DNA from: Macrostomum lignano
Taxonomy: Eukaryota
Direction: 5' to 3'
Length of the DNA stretch: 64,000 bases
Assembly: GCA_002269645.1 (NCBI GenBank)
Contig: NIVC01000382.1
Coordinates: 310,001 to 374,000 of the forward strand
Shown in pieces: positions 34,640 to 57,100 of the stretch (positions are counted from its first letter, which is position 1; each line of letters opens with the position of its first letter). Both the position numbers and the translations under genes were made by a program. A model generated the notes under the pieces. It was not told where the DNA came from. It saw only the letters and a list, made by a program, of their open reading frames with translations, and ran no database searches.

Positions 34640-34727
34640 TTGTAATAATTTGTAGAGAGCTGCTATTGGACTGGAGCTGATTTCTAATATTGATAGCTAA
34701 ATTCACTGTGACAGATTGACAAGAAGT

Positions 34728-34733
34728 AATAAA
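34728..34733 (+). promoter_or_regulatory. Candidate poly(A) signal of RPL37A
   Basis: AATAAA about 90 nt after the stop codon. Motif match only. Confidence 0.45.
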
Positions 34734-34864
34734 TTTGAGTTGCCGTCCTCAGCTGAGCTGGCAATTTGCCTTCTTGGTTGTGTGCCGTTTGTCGTGAATG
34801 GAGTACTTGGTTCTGCGGGCTTGCATTTACTTTATTTTTATACTTTTAGCACAGAATACACAGC

Positions 34865-35550: not shown

Positions 35551-35631
35551 ATGTATAATATCATATCTAGTCTAGGTATCTATCAATAAAAAACTCACTA
35601 AAAACATTCCAGCCCTTAATAGAGACCAGCC

Positions 35632-35949
35632 ATGGTCAACGTGCCGAAAACTCGTCGGACATTTTGCAAGTTCACCTGCAAGAAGCACACGCTGCACAAG
35701 GTGACCCAGTACAAGTCTGGCAAAGCCTCCCTATACGCCCAGGGCAAGCGCCGCTACGATCGAAAACAGAGCGGCTACGGCGGTCAAACTAAGCCAATCT
35801 TTCGTAAGAAGGCCAAGACCACAAAGAAGATTGTGCTGAGAATGGAATGCTCCGAGTGCAAGCACAGGAAACAATTGGCTATTAAACGGTGCAAGCACTT
35901 CGAATTGGGCGGCGATAAGAAGAAGAAGGGACAGATGATCCAGTTCTAA
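35632..35949 (+). CDS. RPL36A: 60S ribosomal protein eL42 (L36a/L44), 105 aa, intronless CDS
   Basis: [48 protein letters not shown] and [13 protein letters not shown]. Confidence 0.97.
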
Positions 35950-36258
35950 AGTTGATTGATGGATAGTTTCACTTATATAATATCTGATGACGTTTGGCCG
36001 TAATGACTTGCAGTAGTTGGATGAAAAAGTGAAAATATAATTGGAATACGTGCTTGTTGCTTTAACGGTTTGGAGTAAAAAAACTTTCACGTTTTCTTGT
36101 TTTATGTTTCTTTTAGACTTTTTAGCTAGAATATATTGTCCGTAAACCAAGGCATTTTAAGTGTTTAGGTTAATAGTGTTAGCTGTTAGTATTTGGTGTT
36201 TAGGGGCTGTAAGTGTCCGTTAATCGTGATGTTTTTGGTCAGGTATTTAGGGTCTGCC

Positions 36259-36360
36259 TACGGCGCTTCGCTGCGTAAAACGGTGAAAAAGATTGAAATC
36301 CAGCAGCATTCAAAGTACACCTGTTCATTCTGCGGCAAAGACGCTCTCCGTCTCCAGGCT
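36259..36360 (+). pseudogene. 102-bp internal fragment copy of RPL37A
   Basis: Matches 34412-34513 with one mismatch (36353). It has no start codon and is embedded in the satellite. Confidence 0.9.
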
Positions 36361-36661
36361 TTGGCAAATTTGCAGCGTAAGGCGTGGTGTTTTAGGTTAG
36401 GTATTTAGGGTCTGCAGTTACCGTGAGTCGTGATGTTTTAGATTAGATATTTAGGGTCTGCAGTGTCCGTGAGTCGTGATGTTTTAGATTAGGTATTTAG
36501 GGTCTGCAGTGTCCGTAAGGCGTGGTGTTATAGGTTAGGTATTTAGGGTCCGCAGTGTCCGTGAGTCGTGTTTTAGATTAGGTATTTAGGGTCCGCAGTG
36601 TCCGTGAGTCGTGTTTTAGATTAGGTATTTAGGGTCTGCAGTGTCCGTGAGTCGTGTTTTA

Positions 36662-37970
36662 CGAGGGACACTCCAAAAGTTTTGCAATTCAACCACTTGC
36701 GCAAGTCGCACAATCTTCAAAATCAACCCTCTGTACAATAAACATGTATATAGTCCCCACCTCAATTTTTTAGTAATTTCATACATATATGCCTGCTCAG
36801 CCCCCAGTCAAAGTCAGTGACTCCTTAACCTGTACTGCTGCGGCCATGGAATTGAATCGTGAGCAGAATCGGCTACTAATTTGGTACTGCCACAAGCGAA
36901 AGCTCACGGCGCTTGAGACTCATGCCGAGCTACTAGCAACATTGGAGGCTCAAGCACCGTCATATGCTACGGTTACACGCTGGTACCGCGAGTTCCAGGC
37001 CGGCAGGACCAGCTTTTCTGACGACCCCCGGCCCGGGAGACCTCCGACAGCAGCGACGGAGGAAAACATCGCTGCAGTGCAGGAGCTGATCCATCAGGAT
37101 CCGCGAATCACCACGGACACGTTAGCTATGAATGTTGGCATCGGATCGGCAGCGGTCGATACGATTCTACACGATCACCTCAGAGTCAGGAAGCTTTGTG
37201 CCCGATGGATACCCCACATCCTGACAGATGCTCAGAAACAGGCCCGCATGGAGTTCTGTCAGTTTCTCATCGATCGATATGAGCACGGGAGCCATCAGCG
37301 CCGCTCTGAAGTCATCACTGGTGATGAGACGTTTCTCTATCATTTTGACGTCGAGACAAAGCGCAGCAGTGCAGAGTGGGTGCCGGAAGGTGGGCAACGA
37401 CCCCTGAAAGCAAGGCGGTCCCGGTCCCAGGGCAAGCGGATGTTTGCCATCTTCTTCGACTCACAAGGCGTGGTGGCGATGGCGAAGCTGGAGGGTCAAG
37501 CTACAGTCACTGCTCGATGGTACACTGAAGAGTGCTTGCCTGTCGTGATCGACAGCGTGACCCAGAGGGCACCAAGGACGGGAATGCGAGGGCGGAAGCT
37601 TCACCATGACAACGCCCCCGCCCACACGGCTGCTGCAACTCGAGCGTTCCTGGACCAAGAGGGCATTGCAACGCTACCACACCCGCCCTACTCACCAGAC
37701 CTCGCCCCCTGCGACTTCTGGCTCTTTCCAGAAATCAAAAAGTCGCTTAGGGGGTGCAGGTTTCAGTCCGACGAGGAGCTGGAGCAGGCGGCGAAGGAGG
37801 CGACTGACGGCATCCCAATTGAAGAGTTCCAGGGCCTCATGAACAAGTGGCTCGGAAGAGCGCACAAGTGTTTGCAGTTCCGGGGAGCCTACTTTGAAGG
37901 ATTGTAATAGAAAAGTTTAGCAGAATTAACTTTAAATAGTCGAATTGCAAAACTTTTGGAGTATCCCTCG
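36662..37970 (+). mobile_element. Full-length mariner (Tc1/mariner) DNA transposon, 1309 bp
   Basis: 29-bp TIRs at 36662-36690 and 37942-37970 (1 mismatch). TA TSD at 36660-61 and 37971-72. Removing the element restores the satellite unit gtgttttagattag. Confidence 0.97.
36846..37907 (+). CDS. Mariner transposase, DD34D, about 353 aa, intact
   Basis: N-terminal HTH region, WIPHIL (WVPHEL-like), ITGDET, HHDNAPAH and HPPYSPDLAPCDF, with 34 residues between the 2nd and 3rd Asp. No stops or frameshifts. The ORF is also open from 36789. Confidence 0.95.
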   Translation: MELNREQNRLLIWYCHKRKLTALETHAELLATLEAQAPSYATVTRWYREFQAGRTSFSDDPRPGRPPTAATEENIAAVQELIHQDPRITTDTLAMNVGIGSAAVDTILHDHLRVRKLCARWIPHILTDAQKQARMEFCQFLIDRYEHGSHQRRSEVITGDETFLYHFDVETKRSSAEWVPEGGQRPLKARRSRSQGKRMFAIFFDSQGVVAMAKLEGQATVTARWYTEECLPVVIDSVTQRAPRTGMRGRKLHHDNAPAHTAAATRAFLDQEGIATLPHPPYSPDLAPCDFWLFPEIKKSLRGCRFQSDEELEQAAKEATDGIPIEEFQGLMNKWLGRAHKCLQFRGAYFEGL

Positions 37971-38316
37971 TAGATTAGGTATTTAGGGTCCGCAGTGTCC
38001 GTGAGTCGTGTTTTAGATTAGGTATTTAGGGTCCGCAGTGTCCGTGAGTCGTGTTTTAGATTAGGTATTTAGGGTCTGCAGTGTCCGTGAGTCGTGTTTT
38101 AGATTAGGTATTTAGGGTCTGCAGTGTCCGTGAGTTGTGTTTTAGATTAGGTATTTAGGGTCTGCAGTGTCCGTGAGTCGTGGTGATTTAGGTTATTTAG
38201 GTATTTGGGGTATTTAGGTGATTTAGGTATCTGTAAGTCTTTGAATCTTGGTGATTGCTACTACAAATATGGTTGCCATGGCAACTAATGCTAACAAACA
38301 CAATCAATTTGCAGAC

Positions 38317-39354
38317 ATGACCAATTCAACCAATCACGGCAATAGTAATCAGGACACGCCGGAGAGTCTAGCGGCTAACAATGAGCAACTGGCCAAACGG
38401 TGCAATGTTGTCCAGGTTACTAATATATCGCCGCAGGCTACTAAGGATCAGATTAAATCGCTGATGGGCTACCTCGGCCACATAGACGAGCTAGTGGTCT
38501 ATCCGAATAATATTAATACTGACCCGCCGCCGTCCAGCCTGGTAGCTTATATTCGTTATAACGAACGCGAGAATGCTCTGCTGAGCTTGCATTTGAACAA
38601 TACTGTTCTGTTAGACAGAGCACTGATTGTATTGCCTGTGCTATCCAATAAAATACCGGACGAAGCCTACGCTATGAAGGTGATGTGCCCAGAGCACACG
38701 TCCGCAGGCGTGTTTCCTAAAACTGCCGACTGGCCATTGGACGTAATCAGTATGGTTGTTGGCAAGATGGGGGAGCAGCAGATTATCACTGTTGATCCCA
38801 AACTGTCGTCTGAGCACGCCTACCCGCCTTTGCCGCCTACTACCGATCCTAATAGGATTGAGGAGATCCGGCGGACTGTGCTGGTTACCGGGCTGGAGTC
38901 TAACACCAACCCGCAACAGGTGAGCGCTTGGTGTCTGCATGTCTGTCTGCATGTCTGTCTGCTGTCTGTCTGCTGTCTGTCTGCATGTCTGTCTGCATGT
39001 CTGTCTGCCTGTCTGTCTGCTGTCTGTCTGCATGTCTGTCTGCATGTCTGTCTGTCTGTCTGTCTGTCTGCTGTCTGTCTGCATGTCTATCTGCATGTCT
39101 GTCTGCCTGTCTGTCTGCATGTCTGCCTGTCTGCCTGTCTGTCTGTCTGCATCTGCATGTCTGTCTGTCAGTCTGTCTGCATGTCTGTCTGCATGTCTGT
39201 CTGCATGTCTGTCTGTCTGTCTGCATGTCTGTCTGTCTGTCTGTCTGTCTGCATGTCTGTCTGCATGTCTGTCTGCTGTCTGTCTGCATGTCTGTCTGCA
39301 TGTCTGTCTGCATGTCTGTCTGTCTGTCTGTCTGTCTGTCTGCCTGTCTGTCTA

Positions 39355-39399
<45 letters not shown>

Positions 39400-39436
39400 G
39401 TGTCTGTCTGCCTGTCTGTCTGCATGTCTGTCTGCA

Positions 39437-39469
<33 letters not shown>

Positions 39470-39583
39470 GCCTGTCTGTCTGCATTTCTGTCTGCACGTC
39501 TGTCTGTCTGTCTGCATGTCTGCATGTCTGTCTGTCTGTCTGTCTGCATGTCTGCCTGTCTGTCTGCATGTCTGTCTGTCTGC

Positions 39584-39625
<42 letters not shown>

Positions 39626-41393
39626 GCTATCTGTCTGTCTGTCATTCACACCCTGAGTCCCCGCCCCCCACCCAGGTGATCTCCTACTTCGAGCCCGATC
39701 TGGAAGTGAAATTCGCTCGCATGGCAACCGGCGACGGCGGTCGAATCGGCTGCTTTGTTGAATTCTCGTGCCAGACTAGCATAGCTAAGGCGCTGGCCAT
39801 GTCCGGCGGGGTGATCAACGACGGTCCGGCTGTAGTGCAGCACGCCACCTGCGCTATCATCAAGCCGGCCACAATGTACGGAGTAGATCCGAAGACCAGC
39901 TTTTTCACCGAGAGTGCGCCTGGCAGCCGGCAAGCTGGCAGATCTTCGTCTAGGCGCAGTCGATCTAGGTTGGTTTGTGTTTGTGTTTGTGCGCGTATTA
40001 TCGGAATGTCAGAGACTTTAACCTGGGTGTCAAGGTGTCAAGGACTCATATTTTGTTGTCAAGGTCTCAGATTTGGTTGTCAAGTGCTCACATTTGGGTC
40101 TCAAGACCTCAGAGTTAGTTGTTAAGGTCTCAAAAGTGGGTCGTCAGGGTTTGTAATGTCTGTCAAGGGCTAAAATTTGGTTGTCAAGGCCTCAAATTGG
40201 ATGTCAAGGACTCAACTTGGATGTCAAGGACTCAAAGTTGGTTGTCAAGGCCTCAAATTGGATGTCAAGGACTCGAATATGGTTGTCAAGGGCTCAAATT
40301 TGGTTGTCAAAGCCTGAAATATTGTTCTCAAAGACTCAAATTTAGTTGCCACGAACTGAAAAATGGTTTTTCCGGGTCTCAAATTTGGTTGTCAAGGCCT
40401 AAAATATGGTTGTTATGGTTTAAAATTTGGTTTTCAAGGTTTTTAAATTTGGCAAATCAAAAATCAAAATCAAACTTCTATAATCGAAATTTTATCCCAA
40501 GAATTAAAAAAAGCCTGCTGCGAATCCTTAAACCCAGGTCCTCCAGACGCTCGCGCCACTCAGAGCGTCGTCGTTCGCGCTCGCGCCATAGTCACAGGCG
40601 CCGCTCGTCGCGCTCTCGTTCGCGTTCCCGTCGATCATCGCGCGACCGGGACCGGGATCGGGACCGGGACCGCAAGCGCAGCAGTCGCAGACGCAGCCGC
40701 GATAGGGATCGAGACCGGGACCGCGACAGGGACCGGGACCGGGACCGCGACAGGGACTCGCGCAAGCGGAAGCGCAGCCGCAGCCGAGACAAGCATCGGG
40801 ATAAGGACAAGGATCGGGACCGAGACCGGGACCGGGATCGGGATCGCGGCGACGGCGAGGGCGAGGCTGGTCGCACGACGAAATCGCGCAGTCGCAGTCG
40901 GAGCCGCGGTGGCAAGCGTCGGCATCGTCATCGTAGCCGGGACCGCGATAAGAATCGGGACCGGGATCGGGATCGCAAGCGGGACCGTGGCAAAGACGGC
41001 GATCAAGTTGAAGAATCGTCGTCTAACGCCGGCGGAGTCGCGGCAGGCGGCGCAACAGCTGACGAAGACACGAGAGGCAGCGCCGGTGACGGAGGCGGCG
41101 GCAGTCGTAACAGCAGCCGCAGCAGGAGCCGCAGCAACAGTTGCAGTCGCGGACCAACAGGCGAAGTCAAAACCGAGGACAGCGCTAAAGAAGAGGCCGG
41201 CAATGATAATAAAACTGAAGCTAGTAGCGCTGAACAGCAGAAAGAGACAGTTGCGGAAGTAGCTGAAGAGGCTAAGAACGAAGCTAGCGAGGAGAAAACC
41301 GAGGCCCAGCAGCAGCAAGAGCCGCAGGCGGAAGCGGAAGCGAAGGTAGAAGCTACGGAGTCTGCTAACGATTCCTCCATGGACACTTCGTAG
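38317..41393 (+). CDS. SREK1: SR-related splicing factor, SREK1/SRSF11 family (2 RRMs + RS/RD domain), 3 exons, about 583 aa
   Basis: Exons 38317-38919, 39676-39968, 40538-41393. Motifs VVQVTNISPQA, HLNNTVLLDRALIV, IPDE, IEEIRRTV and EVKFARMA...FVEF, then a long RS/RD tract. The start is uncertain: ATGs occur at 38269, 38278 and 38317; the last follows ctaac...tttgcag. SREK1 versus SRSF11 is not resolved. Confidence 0.85.
38930..39645. repeat. (TCTG)n/(ctgcatgt) microsatellite filling SREK1 intron 1
   Basis: Direct reading between the donor at 38920 and the acceptor at 39675. Confidence 0.95.
40015..40445. repeat. Degenerate ~22-bp repeat (tttggttgtcaaggnctcaaa) in SREK1 intron 2
   Basis: Recurrent gtcaagg...ctcaaa units. 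Confidence 0.8.
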
Positions 41394-41624
41394 ATCATGA
41401 AACATAAATAATTGATTGCCGGTGACAAATCAATGGTTGGACTGGCTAACAGTTGAGGGGGCCTATTACATATTCAGTTTGTATAGAGACATTCTCTGTG
41501 TGTTGTGTGTGAATGAATGTGCTGTTTTTTATATGAACTTAGTGAATAAAATAATATTGGTAAGAAACTAAATTTTGTTATTCCGTAAGTCCTTACTCTA
41601 AAAATTCTGAAATCTTTTCCGAAT

Positions 41625-42170
41625 TTTCAAAATGCCATTTCCCGAAGTTGAGAGATGCCATTTCCCGAAGTTGAGAGATGCCATTTCCCGAAGTTGAGAG
41701 ATGCCATTTCCCGAAGTTGAGAGATGCCATTTCCTAAATTTGAGAGATGCCATTTCCGAAGTTGAGAGATGCCATTTCCCGAAGTTGAGAGATGCCATCT
41801 CCTAAATTTGAGAGATGCCATTTCCTAAATTTGAGAGATGCCATTTCCGAAGTTGAGAGATGCCATTTCCCGAAGTTGAGAGATGCCATTTCCTAAATTT
41901 GAGAGATGCCATTTCCCGAAGTTGAGAGATGCCATTTCGTGAAATTGAGAGATGTCAGTTCCTGAAGTAGAGAGATGCCATTTCCTAAATTTGAGAGATG
42001 CCATTTCCTAAATTTGAGAGATGCCATTTCCTGAAGTTGAGATATGCCATTTCCCAAAGTTGAGAGATGCCATTTCCCAAAGTTGAGAGATGCTATTTCC
42101 TGAAGTTGAGATATGCCACTTCCCGAAGTTGAGAGATTCCATTTCCTGAAGTTGAGAGATGCCATTTTCA
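41625..42170. repeat. 23-bp minisatellite (gagatgccatttcccgaagttga)n
   Basis: Period 23 (41641, 41664, 41687). Confidence 0.93.
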
Positions 42171-42854
42171 AAGTTAAGAAATGCTTTTGAAATAAATTAC
42201 AGCTTCAAATTTATGTTAAAAATTGCTATCATTAATCAGCAATTTCAATTATTCATCATAGCTGCTAATCTAGTTTAGTTTAAGTCAAAGTGCATTGTAT
42301 GATAAAAATGCTTTTAAAAATATTCTTGTATTGTACAAGTGGACTGTTCTTAGAAGTATTGTTTTTGTAATATGCAGTGTAACCGCATTAATAATAATTA
42401 TTTTATTTCAAACATTTATATTAACAAATAATTGTTGTGCACATTATCATTCTTTTTTAATTAATACGCTATTGTTAGTTGTACCGCAGCGCATTGTTCT
42501 ACTCATCATAATCTTGTGCTCTAATTATAATTGAATATAATTAGTAAGCTAAGTAGAATAATTTAATTCAACAAAACAAATGCATGCCAAAATGCATAGT
42601 GAATAATCAGAAAGTACAGTAATGTCTGTCTTAATTTCGAAGTGTTAAAGTGCTGTTTCTATTATGTTAAGTAAACAATAGGACGACTCCAAATATATTA
42701 TATAAGCCTTCAACTAACGTCGATCAAATATGAGGGGTAATAAATGTTTATCTTAAAAACTATATTTTTAATTTGTCAATCTTTTTGTAGAAGTTTTAAT
42801 ATAGATAAGTTAATCCAATATCATGTTATTTTATCCCCAAATCGTACCTCCCAA

Positions 42855-43107
42855 TTGCTATGGAAACCATCTAGCCCAAATCCCCATGGAAACCATATCT
42901 ACCCCACATCCCCATGGAAACCATATCTACGCCACATCCCCACGGAAACCATATCTACCCCACATCCCCATGGAAACCATATCTACCCGGGTCCCCATGG
43001 AAACCATCTACCTCGCATATCTACTTATCTACCTATCTGTCTAACATCTACCTATCCATCTATCATCTATCTATCTACAACTTTGTATCTATCTATCTAT
43101 CCATCTG

Positions 43108-43151
<44 letters not shown>

Positions 43152-43207
43152 ATCTATCTATCTAATCTATCTATCTAATCTATCTATCTAATCTATCTAT
43201 CCATCTG

Positions 43208-43271
<64 letters not shown>

Positions 43272-43285
43272 ATCTATCTATCTAC
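42855..43285. repeat. 28-bp repeat (ccccatggaaaccatatctaccccacat) followed by (TATC)n
   Basis: 28-bp units at about 42855-43010 and a TATC microsatellite at about 43015-43285. One more partial 28-bp-like unit lies just before the PEX12 ATG. Confidence 0.88.
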
Positions 43286-43387
43286 ACATCTACCCCAAAT
43301 ACTCCACACATAGTCCATATCTACCCTTCATCCCCATGGAGACAATGTGCATATCGGTAAGGAAACATACAAATAAAAAATGCATGC

Positions 43388-44482
43388 ATGGCTGATGACG
43401 CAATCGCCAACCAGCCTGACGTTGCCGCCGCCTCCACGGCAGTCCGGCCCAGTGTGTTTGATTTATTAGCAGCCGATCAGCTGTCGAGCTTATTACAGCC
43501 GGCATTCGATCATCTGTTAACATCAGTAGCCAGTTGGCTTACTACCGCTAATAATGACAATGAGGACCAGCCTACTGACGCTAGTAGTAGACCTAGAATA
43601 TTAATTCTTCACCGTCTGGCCGATTGGTTAGTTCGCCATCGACGCGTCGCATTCGCTTTGTTGTCGATTTGCGTCGAAATCTACTGTCTAAGACGCAGAG
43701 GCGCCACATTTGCTGAGAATTTCTATTCACTTCGTAGGCGTCGAGTTGCTGATGGTGGAGTCGCATTAACTGCTAGGCTAGTTGTTATGTCGCTGTTTAC
43801 ATCCACAGTCGTTCCCATGGTAACTAGATGGCTGTCCGAGCTGTACGAAGAATGGGCCGAACGGTCTATCGTTGAAGAATCGGACTCTGATACTTTGGGT
43901 TCGACTATAAGAAAACAATTTTTAACTTGTCTCGTCAAAGTTTATCCTCGAGCTAGAGCTGTATTGTTGCTTAGCAACGCGGCTTTACTATTCGGCTACC
44001 TAACTGAACGAGTCGATCGGCATAGATTAGAACACGTTCTAGCCGGTGTTAGGCTAAGCTGTCAAATTGATCATCCAATTGATGAAGAAGCTAATGGAAG
44101 AGTCGGCTTGCGTTACTGGGCTAGTCAGGCGTTGAGTCACGGAGTAACATTGGGCATGTTCTTCTTGCAGTTCTACCAGTCCAGAGTTGATAGCGATGGC
44201 CATTCGTCCAGTGCTTCGGCGGCGGCTGCTGCACCGTCACCTTATCTTGGCGCCGTGTCGATTCCTCCGCCGCCGAGGCGGCATCCGGCATCCGACCATG
44301 TCGATCCTCGATTGTGCCCCATGTGCAAACGACCGAGGCGTAATCCTTGCGCTTTAACCACTTCCGGTCACGTGTTCTGTTTCGCGTGTATTCACAGTCA
44401 TCTGGCTGGGAATGGAAGCGCTGGAAAGTGTCCAGTAACTGGTGTACCATCGAGTATTCGGCATATTGTTCGACTGTTGTGA
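43388..44482 (+). CDS. PEX12: Peroxin-12 (peroxisomal RING E3 subunit), 364 aa, intronless CDS
   Basis: N-terminal PSVFDLLAADQLSSLLQPA, ATFAENFYSLRR, FFLQFY, PPPP, and the degenerate RING CPMC...SGHVFCFACI...KCPVTG. Confidence 0.93.
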   Translation: MADDAIANQPDVAAASTAVRPSVFDLLAADQLSSLLQPAFDHLLTSVASWLTTANNDNEDQPTDASSRPRILILHRLADWLVRHRRVAFALLSICVEIYCLRRRGATFAENFYSLRRRRVADGGVALTARLVVMSLFTSTVVPMVTRWLSELYEEWAERSIVEESDSDTLGSTIRKQFLTCLVKVYPRARAVLLLSNAALLFGYLTERVDRHRLEHVLAGVRLSCQIDHPIDEEANGRVGLRYWASQALSHGVTLGMFFLQFYQSRVDSDGHSSSASAAAAAPSPYLGAVSIPPPPRRHPASDHVDPRLCPMCKRPRRNPCALTTSGHVFCFACIHSHLAGNGSAGKCPVTGVPSSIRHIVRLL

Positions 44483-44569
44483 TGCTGTTTATGACGGGCT
44501 GTAGATTTTAACAAGTAGCTTAGCTTAGCTATAAGATATTATTGTGCTTAACTGCTCTATTAGTTATTG

Positions 44570-44695
44570 CCTGACAAGTTAGTCTATAGACAGTCCACTA
44601 TCCTATGACCGATTAGTCTATAGACAGTCTGCACCCTATGACCGATTAGCCTATAGATCAATCTGTACCCTATGACCGATTAGTGTATTAGACCT
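44570..44695. repeat. Short degenerate array of ccctatgaccgattag units, related to the 29-bp array at 46788
   Basis: ctatgaccgattag occurs 3 times with similar spacers. Confidence 0.75.
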
Positions 44696-45182
44696 GTTTG
44701 ATTATCAGTCACTTTAGAGACCTAATTAATAATCTTTATTATCGTCAAGATCGTAAATCGAGACAATTATTTCTACTTATAGCCTAACTGTTTAAATTGC
44801 CCTGGGTGTTGTACCTGACCTGACTTTGTGTACTTTTAGTGCACGCGTGTATCTGTATGTAGTGTTATTTGCAATTTTATGTATTTACATTTTTAATAAT
44901 TTAACAATTTGATTTTCTTGTTCAATTAATTGTTTGTGACATTTCCCATATCTATGCTGTACATACAAAATTAACATTTTAAATTGAGTTATAGAATTTG
45001 TATATCTGCAGTCGTTTTATTCAATTGATTCATTCGCAACATAATCATGCGTCCAAAGTGGCCAATATGGATCAATATTTTAAGCGCTTTCAACTTGGAA
45101 GCGTAATTAATTGGCAGACTACGTGTTTCGTTCCTTTTAAAATTATTTTCTTCATTTTTGTGAGACAAACTGTGTGGTTTTG

Positions 45183-46035
45183 AGAATCGCCCTTAAACCC
45201 CTTCCAAGAATCGCCCTTAAACCCCCTCTAAGAATCGCCCTTAGAAACCCATTCTAAGAATCTCCCTTAAGCCCCTTCTAAGAATCGCCCTGTAAACCCC
45301 TCTAAAAATGGCCCTTAAACCCCTTCTAAGAATCACCCTTAAACCCCCTCCAAGAATCGCCCTTAAACCCCCTCCAAGAATCATCCTTAAACCCCCTCCA
45401 AGAATCACCCTTAAACCCCCTCCAAGAATCACCCTTAAACCCCTTCGAAGAATCACCCTTAAACCCCCTCCAAGAATCACCCTTAAACCCCTTCGAAGAA
45501 TCACCCTTAAACCCCCTCCAAGAATCACCCTTAAACCCCTTCGAAGAATCACCCTTAAACCCCCTCCAAGAATCACCCTTAAACCCCTTCGAAGAATCAC
45601 CCTTAAACCCCCTCCAAGAATCACCCTTAAACCCCTTCGAAGAATCACCCTTAAACCCCCTCCAAGAATCACCCTTAAACCCCTTCGAAGAATCATCCTT
45701 AAACCCCCTCCAAGAATCGCCCTTAAACCCCTCTAAGAATCCCCCTTAAGCCCCTTCTAAAAATCCCCCTTAAGCCCCTTCTAAAAATCCCCCTTAAGCC
45801 CCTTCTAAGAATCCCCCTTAAGCCCCTTCTAAGAATCCCCTTAAGCCCCTTCTAAGAATCGCCCTGTAAACCCCTCTAAAAATGGCCCTTAAACCCCTTC
45901 CAAGAATCACCCTTAAACCGCCTCCAAGAATCACCCTTAAACCGCCTCCAAGAATCACCCTTAAACCCCCTCTAAGAATCCCCCTTAAACCCCTTCTAAG
46001 AATCCCCCTTAAACCCCTGCTAAGAATGGCCCTTA
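45183..46035. repeat. 24-bp minisatellite (agaatcacccttaaaccccctcca)n
   Basis: Period 24 (an 8-aa repeat in the ORF track). Confidence 0.95.
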
Positions 46036-46081
46036 AACATTCACTATATTCCAGCGTGAATCGCCAAGCCCTGCAGTTGCC

Positions 46082-46546
46082 ATGGCTACCCCATCGTCAA
46101 GCGATCAGCAACAGCAGCAACAACAGCAGCAAGACAGATTCCAACAGTTACAAGACGAACTGTGCGCCCTAATAGAAAACTGCTGGGAAGCCGGCATAAT
46201 GGTGTGCAACTATCAGCCTCACGTCAATCTTCAGCACAAGATGGACTTCCTAGTGAATCGTTTGAACTCTTTAGACCGGGCCAAAGCTCAAGTTGCCGAC
46301 GTTCAAGTCCCACTAGCCGTGTTAAAGTACATTGACGAAGGTCGCAATCCTCATCTGTACACTAGGCATTGTTTAGAAACTGCTCTACAAAGAAACGAAG
46401 AGGTTAAAGGCAAAATTGAGAATGTTAGTCGGTTTCGTACTCTGCTATTGGCCGAACTGTCTCAGGCTTTTGAGCAGGATATGAGCAGGTATAGAAGTCT
46501 CAGGGCCGATCCAACTCCGCCGCATCCACCTAGGACTGACGAGTAG
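46082..46546 (+). CDS. MED10: Mediator subunit 10, 154 aa, intronless CDS
   Basis: VPLAVLKYIDEGRNPHLYTRHCLETALQRNEEVKGKIE...FRTLLLAELSQAF matches the MED10/Nut2 family. Confidence 0.95.
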   Translation: MATPSSSDQQQQQQQQQDRFQQLQDELCALIENCWEAGIMVCNYQPHVNLQHKMDFLVNRLNSLDRAKAQVADVQVPLAVLKYIDEGRNPHLYTRHCLETALQRNEEVKGKIENVSRFRTLLLAELSQAFEQDMSRYRSLRADPTPPHPPRTDE

Positions 46547-46787
46547 TGATGCTCGCCTTTTCTTTGTAACAATAATTTAATCATTGACAATTTATTATTT
46601 GCAACTGTTGTTACCTGTACGACGTATATTAGTAATTGTACTCTTTATTATAACCTTATAAGCTTAAGTGTTTCATTATGTTGCTTTGTAATTTCTTTGA
46701 GAATACGTGTTAAAAATTACGTTAAAGTAATTCGATTCTTTTATTTTAATATACTATTGATTAACAGTAGGAATTAGGCCGATTTGT

Positions 46788-48097
46788 CTGCAGTCAGCTA
46801 TACCCTATGACCGATTATTCTGTGGGCTATACCCTATGACCGATTATTCTGTAGGCTGTACCCTATGACCGATTATTCTGTAGGCTATACCCTATGACCG
46901 ATTATTCTGTAGGCTATACCCTATGACCGATTATTCTGCGGGCTATACCCTATGACCGATTATTCTGTAGGCTGTACCCTATGACCGATTAGTCTGTAGG
47001 CTATACCCTATGACCGATTATTCTGTGGGCTATACCCTATGACCGATTATTCTGTAGGCTATACCCTATGACCGATTATTCTGTAGGCTATACCCTATGA
47101 CCGATTATTCTGTGGGCTATACCCTATGACCGATTATTCTGTGGGCTATACCCTATGACCGATTATTCTGTGGGCTATACCCTATGACCGATTATTCTGT
47201 GGGCTATACCCTATGACCGATTATTCTGTGGGCTATACCCTATGACCGATTATTCTGTGGGCTATACCCTATGACCGATTATTCTGTAGGCTATACCCTA
47301 TGACCGATTATTCTGTAGGCTATACCCTATGACCGATTATTCTGTAGGCTATACCCTATGACCGATTATTCTGTAGGCTGTACCCTATGACCGATTATTT
47401 TGTAGGCTATACCCTATGACCGATTATTCTGTAGGCTATACCCTATGACCGATTATTCTGTAGGCTGTACCCTATGACCGATTATTTTGTAGGCTATACC
47501 CTATGACCGATTATTCTGTAGGCTATACCCTATGACCGATTATTCTGTAGGCTATACCCTATGACCGATTATTCTGTAGGCTATACCCTATGACCGATTA
47601 TTCTGTAGGCTGTACCCTATGACCGATTATTCTGTAGGCTGTACCCTATGACCGATTATTCTGTAGGCTATACCCTATGACCGATTAGTCTGTAGGCTAT
47701 ACCCTATGACCGATTATTCTGTAGGCTATACACTATGACCGATTAGTCTGTAGGCTATACCCTATGACCGATTATTCTGTAGGCTGTACCCTATGACCGA
47801 TTATTCTGTCGGCTATACACTATGACCGATTAGTCTGTAGGCTATACCCTATGACCGATTATTCTGTAGGCTATACCCTACAACCGATTATTCTTTAGGC
47901 TGTACCCTATGACCAATTATTCTGTAGGCTACACCCTATGACCAATTATTCTGTAGGCTGTACCCTATGACCAATTATTCTGTAGGCTGTACCCTATGAC
48001 CAATTATTCTGTAGGCTGTACCCTATGACCAATTATTCTGTAGGCTGTACCCTATGACCAATTATTCTGTAGGCTGTACCTTATGACCGATTATTCT
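46788..48097. repeat. 29-bp minisatellite (ccctatgaccgattattctgtaggctata)n
   Basis: Period 29. The last unit overlaps the first ATG of the NUB1 ORF. Confidence 0.96.
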
Positions 48098-51000
48098 TCA
48101 CTTCAGGAGGAGCAGGAACTGTTGCATAAACTGCGCCAAGCATTGCGCAGCCGCGCTATAAAACTATGGGAGCCGCCGTACACCTCGCCAGACTCAGGTT
48201 CTGCGCCTGACGCAGCCAGCATGCAATCTCTCGCGGAATCTTTGTCGCAGAATCTGCGTCTTTGTCCGTCGGCTTGCGCAGCGGCGCTAGAGAATCTGCG
48301 TCAACAGACGCTAGATAATGCAGAATCGTTGGCGCATTTCAGGGCTACTCAAGAGGCTACGCTGAAGGTTCGCCTGCCGCGTGGACAGAATCCCCAGTTG
48401 CTGAGGATTCGATGCAGTCTGCAATCGACCGGCTATCAGTTTAAATCCTTAATTGTTGCCAGGGCACCTCAGCTGTCTATGGCCGGGGTTAGCCTCATCT
48501 GCAATGGTCGAGTGCTTGAAGACGCTCTGTCCCTTGGTAGGTTGGGGGGATGGGGGAATTGTGTGATTTATGAATTGGGGATTTATGCAATTCATGATTT
48601 GGGGAATTATGTGATTTATGATTTGAGGAATTATACGAATTATGATTTGGGGAATTATGCGATTTATGATGGCCATAATTATGCGATTGATTATTGGGGA
48701 ATAATGCGATTTATGATCGGGGAATTATGGGATTTATGATCGGGGAGTTATTCGATTGATTATTGGGGAATAATGCGATTTATGATCGGGGAATTATTCG
48801 ATTTATGATCGGGAATTATGCAATTTCTGATCGGGAAATTATAAAATTTATGATTGGAGAGATTATTCGATTTATGATCAGGGAATTATGCAATTTATGA
48901 TCGGGGAATTATGCAATTTATGATCGGGGAATTATGCGATTTATGAACGTCTAATTATGCGATTTATGATCGGGAAATTATGAAATTTATGATTAGGAAA
49001 TTATGAAATTTATGATAAGGGTTATTACAAAGTTTTTTTAGAAATTTATATAATTTTTGGTTAGATAATTATGCAGTTTTTGGATGCGGTAATAAATTTG
49101 AATTTGATTTAATTAAAATTTTGATTAAATAAATTATTTTGATTAAAAAAACGTGAGGAGCAAATCAACAATATAAATTACAATTGAGTAACAATTCCCA
49201 TACAGGCAACCAAGGTGTGCAGCACAACAACAGCCTGATGCTGCTGATGCGCGCTACTACAGACGATGTGCAGAATTTGCGCGCATCAGCCGACGATGCC
49301 GACGCATTGCGCGAGGCCGAGACCGAGGCTGGCCTGCTGGCTGGGGAGGAAGACGACGGATTGGGCTCTGCAGGCGGCGGCTCTGCCGCTCTACACGTTA
49401 CTAATCAGCGAGGAGAGAAGATTAACTTGCCTAGAGAGCATCGGAAAGCTCTTTACTATGCCATGATTCTGGGAGAGAAGGTTCGTACTTATTTATCTAC
49501 CTTTTCAGTGTACCATCAAGTTTTCCTTCTAATAATCTCCCAAATATTCCCCTTAATAATCTCCCCAATATTCCCCTTAGTAATCTCCCTAATATTCCCC
49601 TTACTTATCTCCCCAATACTCCTAGCAATAATCTCCCCAATATTTCCCCTCCCCAATATTCCCCTTAATTTCCCAATATTTTCCTTAGTAATCTCCCTAA
49701 TATTCCCCTTAATTTCCCCAACATTCCCGATAGTAATCTCCCTAATATTCCCCTTACTTATCTCCCCAATACTCCTAGCAATAATCTCCCCAATATTTCC
49801 CCTCCCCAATATTCCCCTTAGTAATCTCCCCAATATATCAATTAGTCTTGCCGCATCCTCCCACGCACACGCAGGGCAAGGCGGCTCTCCGATCGAACCA
49901 GCACGGTCGAGCACTTGTTCTGCTCCTAGCAGCCGATGAAGCCTTCAATCGGGTAGACAGGAGCCTGCTGGACAGAGTGGACAACCACGCACTGCTACAG
50001 CTGGACACGGTCTGGTGCTACCTGTGCCTGGGTCGGCTGGACGAACTGGGCGACGCCTGGGACAGACTGGGCCTGGCTGAGAGGGCGCTGGTGAAGGCCT
50101 ACGGAGAGCAATTGGAACGCGTGGAGGCTGTGAAAGGTTTGCTGGTCTGCTTTTTTATTACTTTTTTATAATACATGATTAAGTACTACGAGTACTTATT
50201 AGGTAGATGGCTATCTTTATTAGCTAGGATACTCTCAAATCCTATCTCAGAACCTGGTGACTTCGGATACTCTCAAATCCCAATTTCACATCCCATCTCA
50301 GAACCAGGTGGCTTAGGGTACTCTCAAATCCCAATTTCAAATCCCATCTCAAAACCAGGTGGCTTATGAAACTCTCAAATCCCAATTTCAAATCCCATCT
50401 CAGAACCTGGTGACTTCGGATACTCTCAAATCCCAATTTCAAATCCCATCTTAGAACCTGGTGACTTCGGATACTCTCAAATCCCAATTTCAAATCCCAT
50501 CGCAGAACCTGGTGACTTCGGATACTCTCAAATCCCAATTTCAAATCCCATCTTAGAACCTGGTGACTTCGGATACTCTCAAATCCCAATTTCACATCCC
50601 ATCTCAGAACCAGGTGGCTTAGGGTACTCTCAAATCCCAATTTCAAATCCCATCTCAAAACCAGGTGGCTTATGAAACTCTCGAATCCCAATTTCAAATC
50701 CCATCTCAGAACCTGGTGACTTCGGATACTCTCAAATCCCAATTTCAAATCCCATCTTAGAACCTGGTGACTTCGGATACTCTCAAATCCCAATTTCACA
50801 TCCCATCTCAGAACCTGGTGACTTCGGATACTCTCAAATCCCAGTTTCACATCCCATCTCAGAATCCCAAATTTCACATCCCATCTCAGAATCCCAATCT
50901 TCGAAGCCAATCAATCCCAAAGCTTAATGCTCTGAATTTTCAGGCACATCAGCAGGCGGCGAGCGAATCCATCTGCTCAGACTGCACCTGCTCAAAGCAA

Positions 51001-52397
51001 TGTGCTGCTTCTACAGCAATCGGCTGGAAGAGGCGGCTACAGAAGCCCGGCTCGCTTCGGCCGAGCTGGACAAACTGGCGGTGGATGACGCCGGGCTGAG
51101 CAGCCTCATGGGAATGGGATTCAGCCTGCTCGAATCCCGGCTAGCTCTGCGCCACTGCGCCAATGATACTCAAGCGGCCATCAATTGGATTGTTGCTAGG
51201 CGCGAACGGCAGCGAACTCAAGCTGCCGAGCGTAAATTGCAGCGTCGTTTAGGTTACCTTGACGACGGCGAGACTCGAGTATCGGCTGCTAGTTGTCTGC
51301 GACTCACTGAGATGGGCTATTTGGAGTCCCACGCGCACGAGGCTCTGGTGCTTACTAGGAATAGCATTGACGCAGCTCTGACTCTGCTACAGGATGACCA
51401 GGATAGGCTGCAGGTGATTTTGGGGATTCTATCGGTTTGGCGATTTTAGGGGTTTTATTATCGTTTTGGGATCTGGGGGGTTTCATCATTTTGGATTTAG
51501 GATTTGATCATTTCGGTATTTAGGGATTTTTCACTTGGGGATTTCATCATTCCCGAAATTTGGGGGATTTTGAAGATTCTTCCATCTTGAGATTTTAGGG
51601 ATTTTTTCATTTCGGGATTTTTTGGAGTTTTACCATTTCAGGATTCTTGAGGACTTTATCGTTTCGGGATTTTACGGAATTTTATCATTTCGGGATTTTA
51701 GGGATTTTTCATTTCGTGAGTTCGTGAATTTTCAATTCTATGCTTATTTTGGATTCTAGAATTTAGGAAATTTACAATTCTCTACTTAACATCATTATTA
51801 ATCTTCCTTTCCGCGCAGACCCTGGCAGATCAGCGCTACAATTCGCGCCTGCAGCTGGTACTGGACACTGCCACCTCATCCGGAATCGCCTCAGCCGATG
51901 CTCAGCGCATGTCTAGCAAGTTGTGCCGTTTGATTGGGGCCAAGCTTGAAGCCTTGAACCGCCGACAGCAGCGCGACCCGACTGGCAATCATAGTCTGAA
52001 AGCGCAACAGCTGCTAATTGGCTGCATCGATGAACTGCTAGAAGACGAACAGCAGCAAAAGCAGACTAGCGAAGCTTCGGATGCTTCTCCGTCTTCTGCT
52101 GCCGCCAGTTCCTCTGTCCCTTCATCGCTGGCGTCTTGGACAACAACGGATTCAGACGAAGGCGAGGCCGCTACAGCTCTGGCTGCGAAAATTCGTCGAG
52201 TTGAACAGGAAAAAGAAACGGCCGAAGCCGCCTCGCCTGACGCTGCGGCATTGCGCGAAGCGTCTCAACGTCAGCGCAAAGCGTTGGACAAACTGCGCGA
52301 CGAGGTTGGCGATCAAGACGAAGAGGCCTATTTGGATTCCGACCTGCAAGAGGAGAGACGGCAGCTAGACCGTCTATTGGCAATGCTTGACAATTGA
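48083..52397 (+). CDS. NUB1: NEDD8 ultimate buster 1 (UBL + UBA domains), 5 exons, about 672-679 aa
   Basis: Exons 48083(or 48107)-48536, 49206-49480, 49875-50136, 50944-51413, 51819-52397, all GT-AG and in frame. Motifs IKLWEPPYT, LLAADEAF, LLDRVDNHALLQLDTVWCY, LRLHLL, and the UBAs LMGMGFS...SRLALR and LTEMGY. Confidence 0.9.
48091..48106 (+). promoter_or_regulatory. Candidate trans-splice acceptor of NUB1 (ttattcttcacttcag)
   Basis: Pyrimidine-rich tract ending in AG. The next base (48107) starts a codon of the conserved NUB1 frame. No obvious upstream cis exon was found. Confidence 0.55.
48545..49020. repeat. Degenerate ~22-bp repeat (gggaattatgcgatttatgatc) in NUB1 intron 1
   Basis: Recurrent units visible. 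Confidence 0.85.
49520..49835. repeat. C/T-rich repeat (aatctccccaatattcccctt) in NUB1 intron 2
   Basis: Recurrent units with a longer duplicated block. Confidence 0.85.
50235..50905. repeat. 51-bp minisatellite in NUB1 intron 3
   Basis: 17-aa periodicity in the minus-strand ORF. The unit is approximately ctctcaaatcccaatttcaaatcccatctcagaacctggtgacttcggata. Confidence 0.92.
51420..51780. repeat. Degenerate repeat (tcatttcgggatttt) in NUB1 intron 4
   Basis: Recurrent catttcgggatttt motif. Confidence 0.65.
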
Positions 52398-52487
52398 TTT
52401 TGGGATAATGCTCTGTAACTGATTTGAATATATCTGGGCAAACGTCGTCATGAAAATTTAAGCAGCTGGGGCCGTAAGGGTTTCGTC

Positions 52488-53600
52488 TTCAGAATCGCCT
52501 CTAAACCACCTTCGGAATCGTCTCTGGACCACCTTCAGAATCGCCTCTGAACCACCTTCAGAATCGCCTCTGAACCACCTTCAGAATCGCCTCTAAACCA
52601 CCTTCAGAATCGCCTCTAAACCACCTCCAGAATCGCCTCTAAACCACCTTCAGAATTGCCTCTGAACCACTTTCAGAATCGCCTCTAAACCACCTCCAGA
52701 ATCGCCTCTGAACCACCTTCAGAATCGCCTCTGAACCACCTTCAGAATCGCCTCTGAACCACCTTCAGAATCGCCTCTGAACCACCTTCAGAATCGCCTC
52801 TGAACCACCTTCAGAATCGCCTCTAAACCACCTTCAGAATCGCCTCTAAACCACCTTCAGAATCGCCTCTAAACCACCTTCGGAATCACCTCTAAACCAC
52901 CTTCAGAATCGCCTCTAAACCACCTTCAGAATCGCCTCTGAACCACCTTCAGAATCACCTCTGAATCACCTTCAGAATCGCCTCTAAACCACCTTCGGAA
53001 TCACCTCTAAACCACCTTCAGAATCGCCTCTGAACCACCTTCGGAATCACCTCTAAACCACCTTCAGAATCGCCTCTGAACCACCTTCGGAATCACCTCT
53101 AAACCACCTTCAGAATCGCCTCTGAACCACCTTCGAAATCACCTCTAAACCACCTTCAGAATCGCCTCTAAACCACCTTCAGAATCGCTTCTAAACCACC
53201 TTCAGAATCGCCTCTAAACCACCTTCAGAATCGCTTCTAAACCACCTTCAGAATCGCCTCTAAACCACCTTCAGAATCGCCTCTAAACCACCTTTAGAAT
53301 CGCTTCTAAACCACCTTCAGAATCGCCTCTAAACCACCTTCAGAATCGCTTCTAAACCACCTTCAGAATCGCCTCTAAACCACCTTTAGAATCGCTTCTA
53401 AACCACCTTCAGAATCGCCTCTAAACCACCTTCAGAATCGCCTCTAAACCACCTTCAGAATCGCCTCTAAACCACCTTCAGAATCGCCTCTGAACCACCT
53501 TCAGAATCGCCTCTGAACCACCTTCAGAATCGCCTTTGAACCACCTTCAGAATCGCCTCTGAACCACCTTCAGAATCGCCTCTGAACCACCTTCAGAATC
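52488..53600. repeat. 23-bp minisatellite (ttcagaatcgcctctaaaccacc)n
   Basis: Period 23. The unit resembles the 24-mer at 45183. Confidence 0.96.
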
Positions 53601-54178
53601 CTATGTACTAAAATTACATCTGAAACTCTATTTTCAATTGATTTTTATTAAAATATCCAGGCCAAACCGGCTTTATAAACTGTATTTGCCGTCATAAAAT
53701 GCTTTTCTGTCTTATAAACAGTTTATCCAGCTGTGTCTTGCGGTGCGAACCCCCTAAAAAACTGAAAATCGGTCAATAAATAAGCCGACATATTGTATTT
53801 ATTTTGTCTTTCTTCTAACTTTTGCGTATCGTGGTATATACGGTTTTTGTTAAACTAAAAATTTTATATATTCCGCGAATTTTAAAATGCGCAAACTTCT
53901 TTGGTGATGCAATAATAATAAAATCTCTATAATTTATTCAGCGATACTACTGCCAACTACTGCTTAGTAGTATTGACATTTTTTTGGGGTAGCCTTATTT
54001 ATTTAAGCTAAGTTTTGTATTACACCAACCCAAAGGGGGGCTAAGAGTGCTAGTCCACTATACTAAAACTGCGATGTGTGTATCTGTTTCTATGTACTTT
54101 TCAGCAGGGAAGCGCCGCACTAACATTATACATAGTAAAACACTACTGCAACCAGCTACTCCAATGAGCTAAATTTCC

Positions 54179-57100
54179 ATGGCTACAGAAGTTGATAATG
54201 CTGACCAAATGCAGAGCAGTAGTAAGCTATTGATGAATATTGGTTAAAATTAATAAATTGTACATTAATTATGTTAATTAATAAATTCAATTTCTAGATG
54301 AAGCAACGGATAAGGAGAAGCCGGCAACAGATCTGGCGGGAAGTAATCCTTTATCCGAGGAAGAAATGGTTTGTAAAAATTAGCATTTCTTACTACTTAC
54401 TTATTTCTCGATTTAGTAGTATTGTAAAAAACAAGGTTTTAACAAGTTTTTAACGCAATTATTTAAGGCCGAATTGGAAGCATATCGCGTTGAATTGTCC
54501 ACTCGTTACGGCCAGTTGGACGCTCTGTTGCTAGGCAACGAGAATCCTAGCGAGTGCGCAGATTTTCCACCATTCGCCAAGAATGACTCCAGTCTGAAAC
54601 GGAATACCGCCTTTGTGAAGAAGCTGGTGAGTTCGTGTTCAGGAGGCATAAACGATGCGTGATATCATGTTTTATAGCCTAAGATATCGGCACCCCATTT
54701 GAGTCTCGGCAACTCAGCAACTCCCCCCCCCCCCATTTGAGTCTTGGCAGCTCAGCAACTCCCTCATTTGAGTCTTGGCAACTCAGCAACTCCCCCCATT
54801 TGAGTCTTGGCAACTCAGCAACTCCCCACCCCCCCATTTGAGTCTCGGCAACTCAGCAACTCCCCCCCATTTGAGTCTCGGCAACTCAGCAACTCCCCCC
54901 ATTTGAGTCTCGGCAACTCAGCAACTTCCCCCATTTGAGTCTTGGCAGCTCAGCAACTCCCCCCATTTGAGTCTTGGCAACTCAGCAACTCCCCCCCCCA
55001 TTTGAGTCTCGGCAACTCAGCAACTCCCCCCATTTGAGTCTCGGCAACTCAGCAACTTCCCCCATTTGAGTCTTGGCAACTCAGCAACTCCCCCCCCCAT
55101 TTGAGTCTTGGCAACTCAGCAACCCCCCCCCCATTTGAGTCTCGGCAACTCAGCAACTCCCCCCCCATTTGAGTCTTGGCAACTCAGCAACCCCCCCCCC
55201 ATTTGAGTCTCGGCAACTCAGCAACTCCCCCCATTTGAGTCTTGGCAGCTCAGCAACTCCCCCCCATTTGAGTCTTGGCAGCTCAGCAACTCCCCCCCCC
55301 ATTTGAGTCTTGGCAGCTCAGCAACTCCCCCCATTTGAGTCTTGGCAGCTCAGCAACTCCCCCCCATTTGAGTCTCGGCAACTCAGCAACTCCCCCATTT
55401 GAGTCTTGGCAGCTCAGCAACTCCCCCCATTTGAGTCTCGGCAACTCAGCAACTCCCCCCATTTGAGTCTTGGCAGCTCAGCAACTCCCCCCATTTGAGT
55501 CTCGGCAACTCAGCAACTTGTCTCTGTCGCCTCTGATTTGTGGAGATGCCCAACAGACCCCTAAAAGACTAACAAGCAATTCCATGTTAATTAGCGGTAT
55601 TAGCAAACTCCATCAATTGCTCAAATCCCGCAGAAAAACTACACAGAATCTCAGCGAGACGCCATCATGCGAGAACTGCCAGCCCTAAACCTGTCTAAAT
55701 ACCTTGAAGAAGTTGCCAATGCACTGTTAGAAGCCAAGTTGAAATCTAGCGACCTATCAAGCATCTTGCTAATTAATTGCTTACTAGCTAGAAACTATGC
55801 CGAATACGCTGAATTAGCGCTGGTTGCTTGGCGAAAGGTTCTGCTGCCAAAGCAGCAACAACCGAAAGAGTCCCAGCAGAGCCAGTGGAATCTGGCTAAA
55901 CTACGTGTCGATCTCCGTCTATACTCGGATTTAATATTCGCAAAAGTTCTACCAACAATGCCAGCTTTGAAGCTGCTTGGCCAATGCTTGCAAGCTCTGA
56001 CATTGAATGACGCGGATTTCTATCACTGCGGTTTAGTCTGTCACCTGTTGAGCCACTCTGGCGACTCGCTTATTGGCCAGCTGCCAACTAGAAAACTCGC
56101 ACTGGCCAACCGGTGCAGCCCAGCAGTTGAGTTGCCTCGCGGTACTCACTATTTAGAGGCCGAGACCAGGCGTCCGTTCTATCGATTGTTAACCGAATAT
56201 GGCAAACGGTTGACCAGCTCACTGACCGACCGGGCTGGCGAGTTGAGTCGGATGGATCGGCAGAATCGGCGAATTTTGAATAGTAAAGGCGAGCTCAGCC
56301 AGGACAGGCGCGACGCTTTTGAGACGTGCAAAAAAGAAGTTGATAGATTGCTTGGTGGGTGACAATTGCAATAAATTTTGCTTTTCTTGATTCACTCAAC
56401 AAAAGTCGGTAGAAATCCCCATAAATCGGTAGAAATCCTCAAATCGGTAGAAATCCCCATACAAATCGGTAGAAATCCCCATATAAAACGGTAGAAATCC
56501 CCATATAAAACGGTAGAAATCCCCATATAAAACGGTAGAAATCCCCATATAAAACGGTAGAAATCCCCATATAAAGTCTGTAGAAATCCCCATATAAAAC
56601 GGTAGAAATCCCCATATAAAACGGTAGAAATCCCCATATAAAACGGTAGAAATCCCCATATAAAACGGTAGAAATCCCCATATAAAGTCTGTAGAAATCC
56701 CCATATAAAACGGTAGAAATCCCCATATAAAACGGTAGAAATCCCCATATAAAACGGTAGAAATCCCCATATAAAACGGTAGAAATCCCCATATAAAACG
56801 GTAGAAATCCCCATATAAAACGGTAGAAATCCCCATATAAAACGGTAGAAATCCCCATATAAAGTCTGTAGAAATCCCCATATAAAACGGTAGAAATCCC
56901 CATATAAAACGGTAGAAATCCCCATACAAATCGGGGGAAATCCCCATGTAAGTGGTAGAAATCCCCATATAAAGCGGTAGAAATCCCCATATAAAACGGT
57001 AGAAATCCCCATATAAAACGGTAGAAATCCCCATATAAAACGGTAGAAATCCCCATATAAGTCGGTAGAAATCCCCATATAAAACGGTAGAAATCCCCAT

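Follow-up and report, generated by a model that had tools for sequence, protein, structure and literature searches.

The NUB1 locus

We analyzed a stretch of 64,000 nucleotides from the flatworm Macrostomum lignano (NCBI GenBank assembly GCA_002269645.1, contig NIVC01000382.1, positions 310,001 to 374,000 of the forward strand), hereafter the window, with a focus on the source of the initiator methionine of NUB1 (NEDD8 ultimate buster 1). All positions are counted from the first nucleotide of the window. On the plus strand, NUB1 is preceded by a PEX2/10/12-family RING gene, whose annotated 5′-partial coding sequence (CDS) begins right after gcATG (43391–44482), and by MED10, its nearest upstream same-strand neighbor, which is likewise annotated as a 5′-partial CDS (46055–46546). 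A sequence-only reading of this DNA had suggested that NUB1 has no start codon of its own and that the AUG comes either from the spliced leader (SL) or from a satellite unit.

The gene corresponds to locus Mlig025284.g1 and GenBank protein PAA84289.1 (Mlig_3_7, NIVC01000382.1). A five-exon GT–AG model with a continuous frame reproduces PAA84289.1 at every residue, with exon 1 (as joined to the SL) at 48107–48536, exon 2 at 49206–49480, exon 3 at 49875–50136, exon 4, which carries the UBA domains identified with Pfam, at 50944–51413, and exon 5, which ends with the stop codon, at 51819–52397, all on the plus strand. The human NUB1 chains 8usc and 8usb align with the product over residues 5–425 (E = 7e-53), the Pfam domains UBA_7, UBA, and Ubiquitin_5 are present, and the top named matches of the assembled model are insect NEDD8 ultimate buster 1 proteins. 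The class is defined by an LW.PPY motif near the N terminus, ubiquitin-like and UBA domains, and full-length homology; all of these were found, and judged by its sequence the gene is a genuine NUB1. A search with the NUB1 model recovered three GenBank proteins of M. lignano that are 98% identical, with the open reading frame (ORF) intact in all three copies. The two further copies lie in paralogous loci, L002 and L003, which we compared with the locus in the window.

The region between MED10 and NUB1, intergenic sequence or outron, is filled by a satellite with a 29-bp unit (consensus GCTATACCCTATGACCGATTATTCTGTAG), for which TRF reports 44.9 copies at 46797–48097 on the plus strand. The copy number is 44.9 in the window versus 32.9 in L002 (5027–5979) and 32.8 in L003 (5021–5973). 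The array holds 44 ATGs, evenly distributed over the three frames, and 43 of them open upstream ORFs (uORFs) of 3 to 15 codons; in 38 of these 43, the TGA stop overlaps the ATG of the next unit. Each unit carries a 10-codon uORF whose TGA overlaps the following ATG in the arrangement ATGA.

Start codons and splice acceptor at the 5′ end of NUB1

The conserved N-terminal motif LWEPPYT is encoded at 48164–48184 (+), where it aligns with human LWKPPYT and with 59 orthologues. The sole genomic in-frame ATG upstream of it lies at 48083–48085 (+), within the last, slightly diverged unit of the 29-bp array as delimited by TRF, and its frame runs open into exon 1; the closest in-frame stop on its 5′ side is TAG at 48041. 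If this codon were used, the protein would begin MTDYSSLQ-EEQELL. The next in-frame methionine, in SMQSL, lies at 48221–48223 (+), downstream of LWEPPYT, and initiation there would therefore mean loss of the motif. Between 48107 and 48230, the only ATGs are this one, past the motif, and an out-of-frame ATG at 48166–48168 (+) that opens a 14-codon ORF. There is thus no genome-encoded in-frame AUG from the acceptor to the conserved N-terminal region of NUB1, and both statements of the sequence-only reading on this point, that 48083 is the only candidate before the motif and that the next methionine excludes the motif, agree with our data. A ribosome that missed an AUG supplied by the SL would be expected to reach the out-of-frame ATG at 48166 and then Met 48221.

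A pyrimidine-rich tract with its acceptor, CCGATTATTCTTCACTTCAG, occupies 48087–48106 (+). The AG at 48105–48106 is preceded by CCGATTATTCTTCACTTC, which is 78% pyrimidines, and only the nine unique bases TCACTTCAG separate the end of the array from exon 1. The terminal CTTCAG fits [T/C]TNCAG, the motif enriched at the trans-splice acceptors of M. lignano (PMC8629364), and base 48107 opens the in-frame codons GAG GAG CAG, as had been noted from the letters before. Three more AGs follow (48108–48109, 48111–48112, and 48114–48115), and the SL AUG would be in frame with NUB1 from any of the four.

The SL of M. lignano is 35 nt long, with the sequence CGGTCTCTTACTGCGAAGACTCAATTTATTGCATG and the 3′ end ...TTGCATG, and about 30% of the genes of this species are SL trans-spliced (PMC8629364), so that the assumption of an AUG-terminal leader holds for M. 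lignano itself. The terminal ATG is conserved in the SLs of M. cliftonense and M. hystrix (PMC10468722). With the junction marked by a slash, an SL joined at 48107 gives SL...TTGCATG/GAGGAGCAG, which is in frame and encodes M-EEQELLHKLRQALRSRAIKLWEPPYT, and translation from this AUG starts MEEQELLHKLRQALRSRAIKLWEPPYT; the predicted SL–NUB1 junction reads ...TTGCATG/GAGGAGCAGGAACTG.

Frame by itself carries little information. The SL AUG would be in frame by chance in 1/3 of cases, and an open in-frame ATG in the last satellite unit has a chance of about 0.24 (1/3 for the frame and about 0.7 for seven stop-free codons), which makes it unremarkable by itself. The weight of the case lies in the lack of an alternative ATG together with RNA-derived evidence for the junction.

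The annotated 5′ boundary

For the Mlig_3_7 annotation, reads trimmed of the SL were mapped, transcripts were cut at the resulting peaks (TBONE), and ORFs were called by TransDecoder (PMC5730564). PAA84289.1 is flagged as partial at its 5′ end and begins with EEQELL exactly at 48107, the base that directly follows the AG. Had the transcript extended to 48083, a complete ORF with a methionine start would have been called. NUB1 probably does not initiate at the ATG at 48083, since that codon lies outside the annotated transcript, whose 5′-partial CDS begins at 48107. The partial flag alone proves little; the informative point is that the boundary coincides with the consensus acceptor that the sequence-only reading had chosen from the letters alone. 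We infer that SL-bearing reads define the annotated boundary at 48107. The MED10 model is likewise 5′-partial and starts at 46055, directly after attccAG (AG at 46053–46054).

In the paralogous loci, 5′-partial CDS starts (6001, 1523, and 4298 in L002; 6001 and 4289 in L003) lie 3 to 36 nt on the 3′ side of the SL junction and not after an AG. These displaced starts in duplicated loci look like pipeline behavior where reads map to several places.

In the protein database, NUB1 of M. lignano is represented only by the three paralogues from GenBank plus a single UniRef model that is a chimera, and RNA-seq-derived ORFs for it were not found there. An exact look-up of the 154-aa MED10 ORF in the protein collection gave no match, and gene-level SL calls were not found in the supplements of M. 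lignano papers that were searched.

Spliced leader footprints at acceptors

The Canu assembly of M. lignano was polished by Pilon with Illumina DNA reads and with RNA-seq reads mapped by STAR (PMC5730564). When the paralogous loci are compared, they differ at trans-splice acceptors by changes that convert the acceptor to the 3′ end of the SL. At the MED10 acceptor, the window reads tccag/CGTGAA and both L002 and L003 read GCATG/CGTGAA. At the acceptor of the PEX-family gene, L003 has ttccag/GCTGAT, L002 has ttcATG, and the window has tGCATG (43386–43390). At the NUB1 acceptor, the window and L003 share ttcAG/GAGGAG, and L002 has ttcTG. The sites compared are 43386–43390 and 46050–46054 in the window, 1482–1486, 4290–4294, and 5987 in L002, and 4281–4285 in L003. 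The changed positions are nested: –2 at NUB1; –2 and –3 at the PEX-family gene of L002; and –2, –3, and –5 at the PEX-family gene of the window and at MED10 of L002 and L003. In each case, a transversion has produced the base of the SL. Moreover, in a 306-nt alignment around the NUB1 acceptor, the A-to-T change is the sole transversion among the L002-specific differences, all others being transitions.

SL-bearing reads that are forced across a junction during RNA-seq polishing would overwrite the nearest bases, which accounts for SL bases standing over acceptors, and these differences are most likely artefacts of assembly polishing. We also considered that the SL-like blocks are real biology, such as cDNA-mediated conversion, and rejected this idea because polishing with RNA-seq in Pilon and the nested pattern make an artefact far likelier. 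The footprints at MED10 and at the PEX-family gene are unambiguous. As marks of SL junctions that do not depend on the annotation, they would extend to NUB1, where the A-to-T change in L002 points to a junction at /GAGGAG. The GCATG at Met 48221 was tried as a further footprint and discarded: given the ATG, a 5-nt match has a chance of about 1/16, and the bases are identical in all three paralogues.

In the PEX-family gene, the ATG at 43388 probably stems from the SL and not from the genome, since the unpolished-looking L003 paralogue has ttccag/GCT and no ATG there. For Mlig_3_7, such "burn-in" of the SL implies that some seemingly genomic ATGs are probably artefacts and that some real acceptors are masked; conversely, the footprints provide a map of SL junctions at no extra cost. 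This is the most useful by-product of the analysis, and it is a technical one.

An SL RNA gene was not found in the 64-kb window. An exact 12-nt suffix of the SL, ATTTATTGCATG, followed by TGTGACGGC, is present at 1688–1699 (+), where about 0.008 such matches per window are expected by chance. It was rejected as an SL RNA gene, as it has neither a GTAAG donor nor an ORF behind it (7 codons). The site may be a long burn-in at a noncoding trans-spliced RNA.

N-terminal length and homology

An exhaustive HMMER search with NUB1 exon 1 returned 49 proteins at E ≤ 0.001, namely the representative of the M. lignano paralogues (P0001), a spurious repeat protein (P0023), and 47 others. These matches served for the distribution of N-terminal lengths; none was recognized as a protein of another flatworm, although the names of the matches were not looked up. 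Among 59 NUB1 orthologues that start with methionine, the spacing from Met1 to LW ranges from 18 to 28 residues, with modes at 20 (n = 19) and 23 (n = 15); a spacing of 19 residues occurs in seven. In M. lignano NUB1, the spacing would be 19 residues from the SL methionine and 27 from the satellite ATG. The earlier comparison of 19 residues with 20 in human NUB1 is sound as far as the one-residue offset goes (query residue 5 aligns with human residue 6), but it is weaker than implied given the range among orthologues. N-terminal length thus modestly favors the SL methionine. Recognizable homology starts at about the exon start, with EQELLHKLRQAL facing EDLLIKLRAKL in Lepidoptera, whereas MTDYS is plain satellite consensus and has no homology to NUB1 N termini.

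Source of the initiator methionine

The acceptor motif, the 5′-partial CDS that begins at 48107, the SL-type base in a paralogue, and the orthologue-like length support the proposal that NUB1 is translated from an SL AUG joined at 48107. We consider it likely that the SL is trans-spliced between 48106 and 48107 and that its 3′-terminal AUG initiates NUB1. According to this model, NUB1 would be transcribed within a longer same-strand precursor whose spacers are filled by satellites, and the 35-nt SL would be trans-spliced to the CTTCAG acceptor to give a mature mRNA of the form SL...UUGCAUG/GAGGAGCAG. The genome-encoded part of this mRNA would hold no AUG ahead of the conserved N-terminal motif, and the SL AUG, in frame and 32 nt from the cap, would serve as the initiator and yield MEEQELLHKLRQALRSRAIKLWEPPYT. 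The ATG at 48083, one of 44 satellite copies, would be lost with the outron.

Several points weigh against this model. The SL–NUB1 junction is deduced from an annotation boundary and an assembly footprint, and the single-base A-to-T change in L002 could be a true substitution. Only one of the three annotated NUB1 paralogues begins exactly at the AG; the NUB1 CDS starts 12 nt past the junction in L002 and 18 nt past it in L003, neither after an AG. In addition, 5′-partial CDSs are common in the annotation and do not always start at acceptors, as the 572-aa gene at 38335 illustrates. All three copies have the genomic ATG at 48083 in frame and open into exon 1. Finally, experimental use of an SL AUG comes from Schistosoma (Cheng et al. 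2006, as summarized in PMC9851317).

The first alternative is that the satellite ATG is the true initiator, either by direct use of 48083 on transcripts that lack trans-splicing or begin in the last unit, or by cis-splicing of a unit donor, ATGACCGATTATTCT/GTAGG, to the acceptor at 48106. The conservation of an open, in-frame 48083 in the three paralogous loci speaks for it, a 38-nt intron (48069–48106) would connect the ATG at 48054 in frame, and the resulting 27-residue spacing is just within the range of orthologues. However, the annotated transcript starts at 48107 and leaves the ATG out, 43 upstream ATGs with short uORFs would precede 48083 on any longer precursor, and MTDYS finds no counterpart in other NUB1 proteins. 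Moreover, the unit donor GTAGG deviates from the species consensus GT[G/A]AG (PMC8629364), and an open in-frame ATG in the last unit is expected in about one of four cases by chance. The co-opted satellite ATG that the sequence-only reading had offered as its second option is thus disfavored by the exclusion of 48083 from the annotated transcript and by the upstream AUGs and uORFs on unprocessed RNA, and we regard it as unlikely. A variant in which the last unit has been exapted, such that a part of the NUB1 transcripts either evades trans-splicing or has its start or a splice site inside the array and is translated from 48083 or from a spliced-in unit ATG, seems to us quite unlikely. If true, it would give two NUB1 N termini, of which one would come from the SL and the other from a satellite that differs in copy number between paralogues.

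Translation could instead start at Met 48221, with the open frame upstream serving as a 5′ untranslated region and the protein without LWEPPYT. In the annotated transcript, no genome-encoded in-frame AUG precedes this codon, but the 38 codons upstream of it (EEQELLHKLR...LWEPPYTSPDSGSAPDAAS) are homologous to the N termini of human, insect, and other NUB1 proteins, invariant LW..PY included, and the out-of-frame ATG at 48166 would catch scanning ribosomes earlier; we consider such a start very unlikely.

A methionine from a cis-spliced upstream exon, located beyond the satellite or in a conjoined MED10–NUB1 transcript, is more doubtful still. Cis- and trans-splicing often share acceptors in flatworms (PMC12582326), and in P0011, a UniRef model based on an older assembly, parts of the PEX-family gene, MED10, and NUB1 are fused. 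We rejected P0011 (373 aa, "Mediator subunit 10") as evidence of such an exon, since most of each gene is missing from this patchwork. Its MED10 part is connected to a point midway through NUB1 exon 1, and the model resembles an ab initio artefact of gene merging across a co-directional cluster. None of the three paralogues has an upstream exon in the RNA-seq-guided annotation, and the best donor-like site of MED10 (46489) would be out of frame.

Equally improbable is that there is no trans-splicing at all and that 48107 reflects an accident of annotation or the start of transcription, with non-AUG initiation or an untranslated copy: other 5′-partial CDS starts in the annotation do not follow an AG, but a random 5′ end right after a consensus CTTCAG is estimated at well under 1 in 100, the neighboring PEX-family gene and MED10 demonstrably receive the SL as seen from burn-in, and the three 98% identical copies keep their ORF intact.

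Relation to known systems

All SLs reported from flatworms end in ATG (PMC12582326). In the M. cliftonense and M. hystrix genomes, the final ATG of the Macrostomum SL was treated as a translation start and retained in the reads so that problems with annotation would not arise (PMC10468722). In Schistosoma mansoni, mRNAs use the 3′-terminal AUG of the SL as the initiator methionine (Cheng, Cohen, Ndegwa & Davis 2006, J Biol Chem 281:733, according to the summary in PMC9851317). Similarly, in NUB1 an AUG-ending SL would be joined directly to an ORF without an AUG of its own and would supply an in-frame Met1. Unlike S. mansoni, M. lignano is a free-living macrostomorph with another SL sequence, SL-AUG initiation is here predicted from sequence, and the NUB1 acceptor adjoins a 1.3-kb minisatellite that carries an in-frame decoy ATG. 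With its SL ending in AUG, the frame maintained, and no genomic AUG before the conserved region, NUB1 appears to belong to this SL-AUG class.

NUB1 also resembles the slORFs described with slORFfinder (PMC9851317), in which an ORF becomes complete only after joining of the SL at a trans-splice site. However, slORFs are usually new or alternative ORFs, whereas in NUB1 the SL would complete the canonical ORF of a conserved gene. Likewise, NUB1 shares with the SL operon genes of M. lignano (Ustyantsev & Berezikov 2021, PMC8629364) a same-strand neighbor, a [T/C]TNCAG acceptor, a repeat-filled spacer, and an adjusted distance well below 1 kb; the supply of start codons is not discussed in that work, and membership of NUB1 is deduced from distances only.

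An SL-supplied start codon is a mechanism known in flatworms since 2006, and NUB1 would be an ordinary case of it: one more conserved gene with Met1 from a flatworm SL would carry little general biological weight. The practical value is greater for users of Mlig_3_7. The mechanism would explain the 5′-partial status of NUB1 and of many other M. lignano proteins in GenBank, and such proteins would be completed by adding a methionine at the SL junction. As a caution, the satellite ATG should not be taken as the NUB1 start.

Gene neighborhood and satellites

Seven consecutive genes lie on the plus strand from 34361 to 54179 and beyond: RPL37A, RPL36A, the gene for the 572-aa protein, the PEX-family gene, MED10, NUB1, and UPF2, whose CDS starts at 54179. 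After adjustment for repeats, the spacer from the MED10 stop (46546) to the NUB1 acceptor measures about 260 nt and that between the PEX-family gene and MED10 about 600 nt. Operons in M. lignano have been defined by a repeat-adjusted distance of less than 1 kb, and repeats accumulate in their spacers (PMC8629364). The PEX-family gene, MED10, and NUB1 probably form an operon-like unit. The satellite arrays end 9 to 16 nt before the MED10 and NUB1 acceptors. A downstream gene of an operon acquires its cap through trans-splicing, which is consistent with the proposed SL addition at NUB1.

MED10, too, is in frame with the SL AUG (M-RESPSPAVA-MATPSS), no stop intervenes before the genomic ATG at 46082, and the protein may carry a 10-residue SL-initiated extension. 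The PEX-family gene may likewise rely on the SL AUG. At its acceptor, an in-frame cis alternative could come from a 7-codon mini-exon (43336–43356) and the 34-nt gtaagg...ag micro-intron behind it.

According to TRF, satellites occupy nearly all noncoding intervals in the window, all four NUB1 introns included. A satellite beside an acceptor is thus typical of the M. lignano genome and not peculiar to NUB1. A related 34-bp repeat at 44579–44693, on the 3′ side of the PEX-family gene, has ACCCTATGACCGA in common with the 29-bp satellite.

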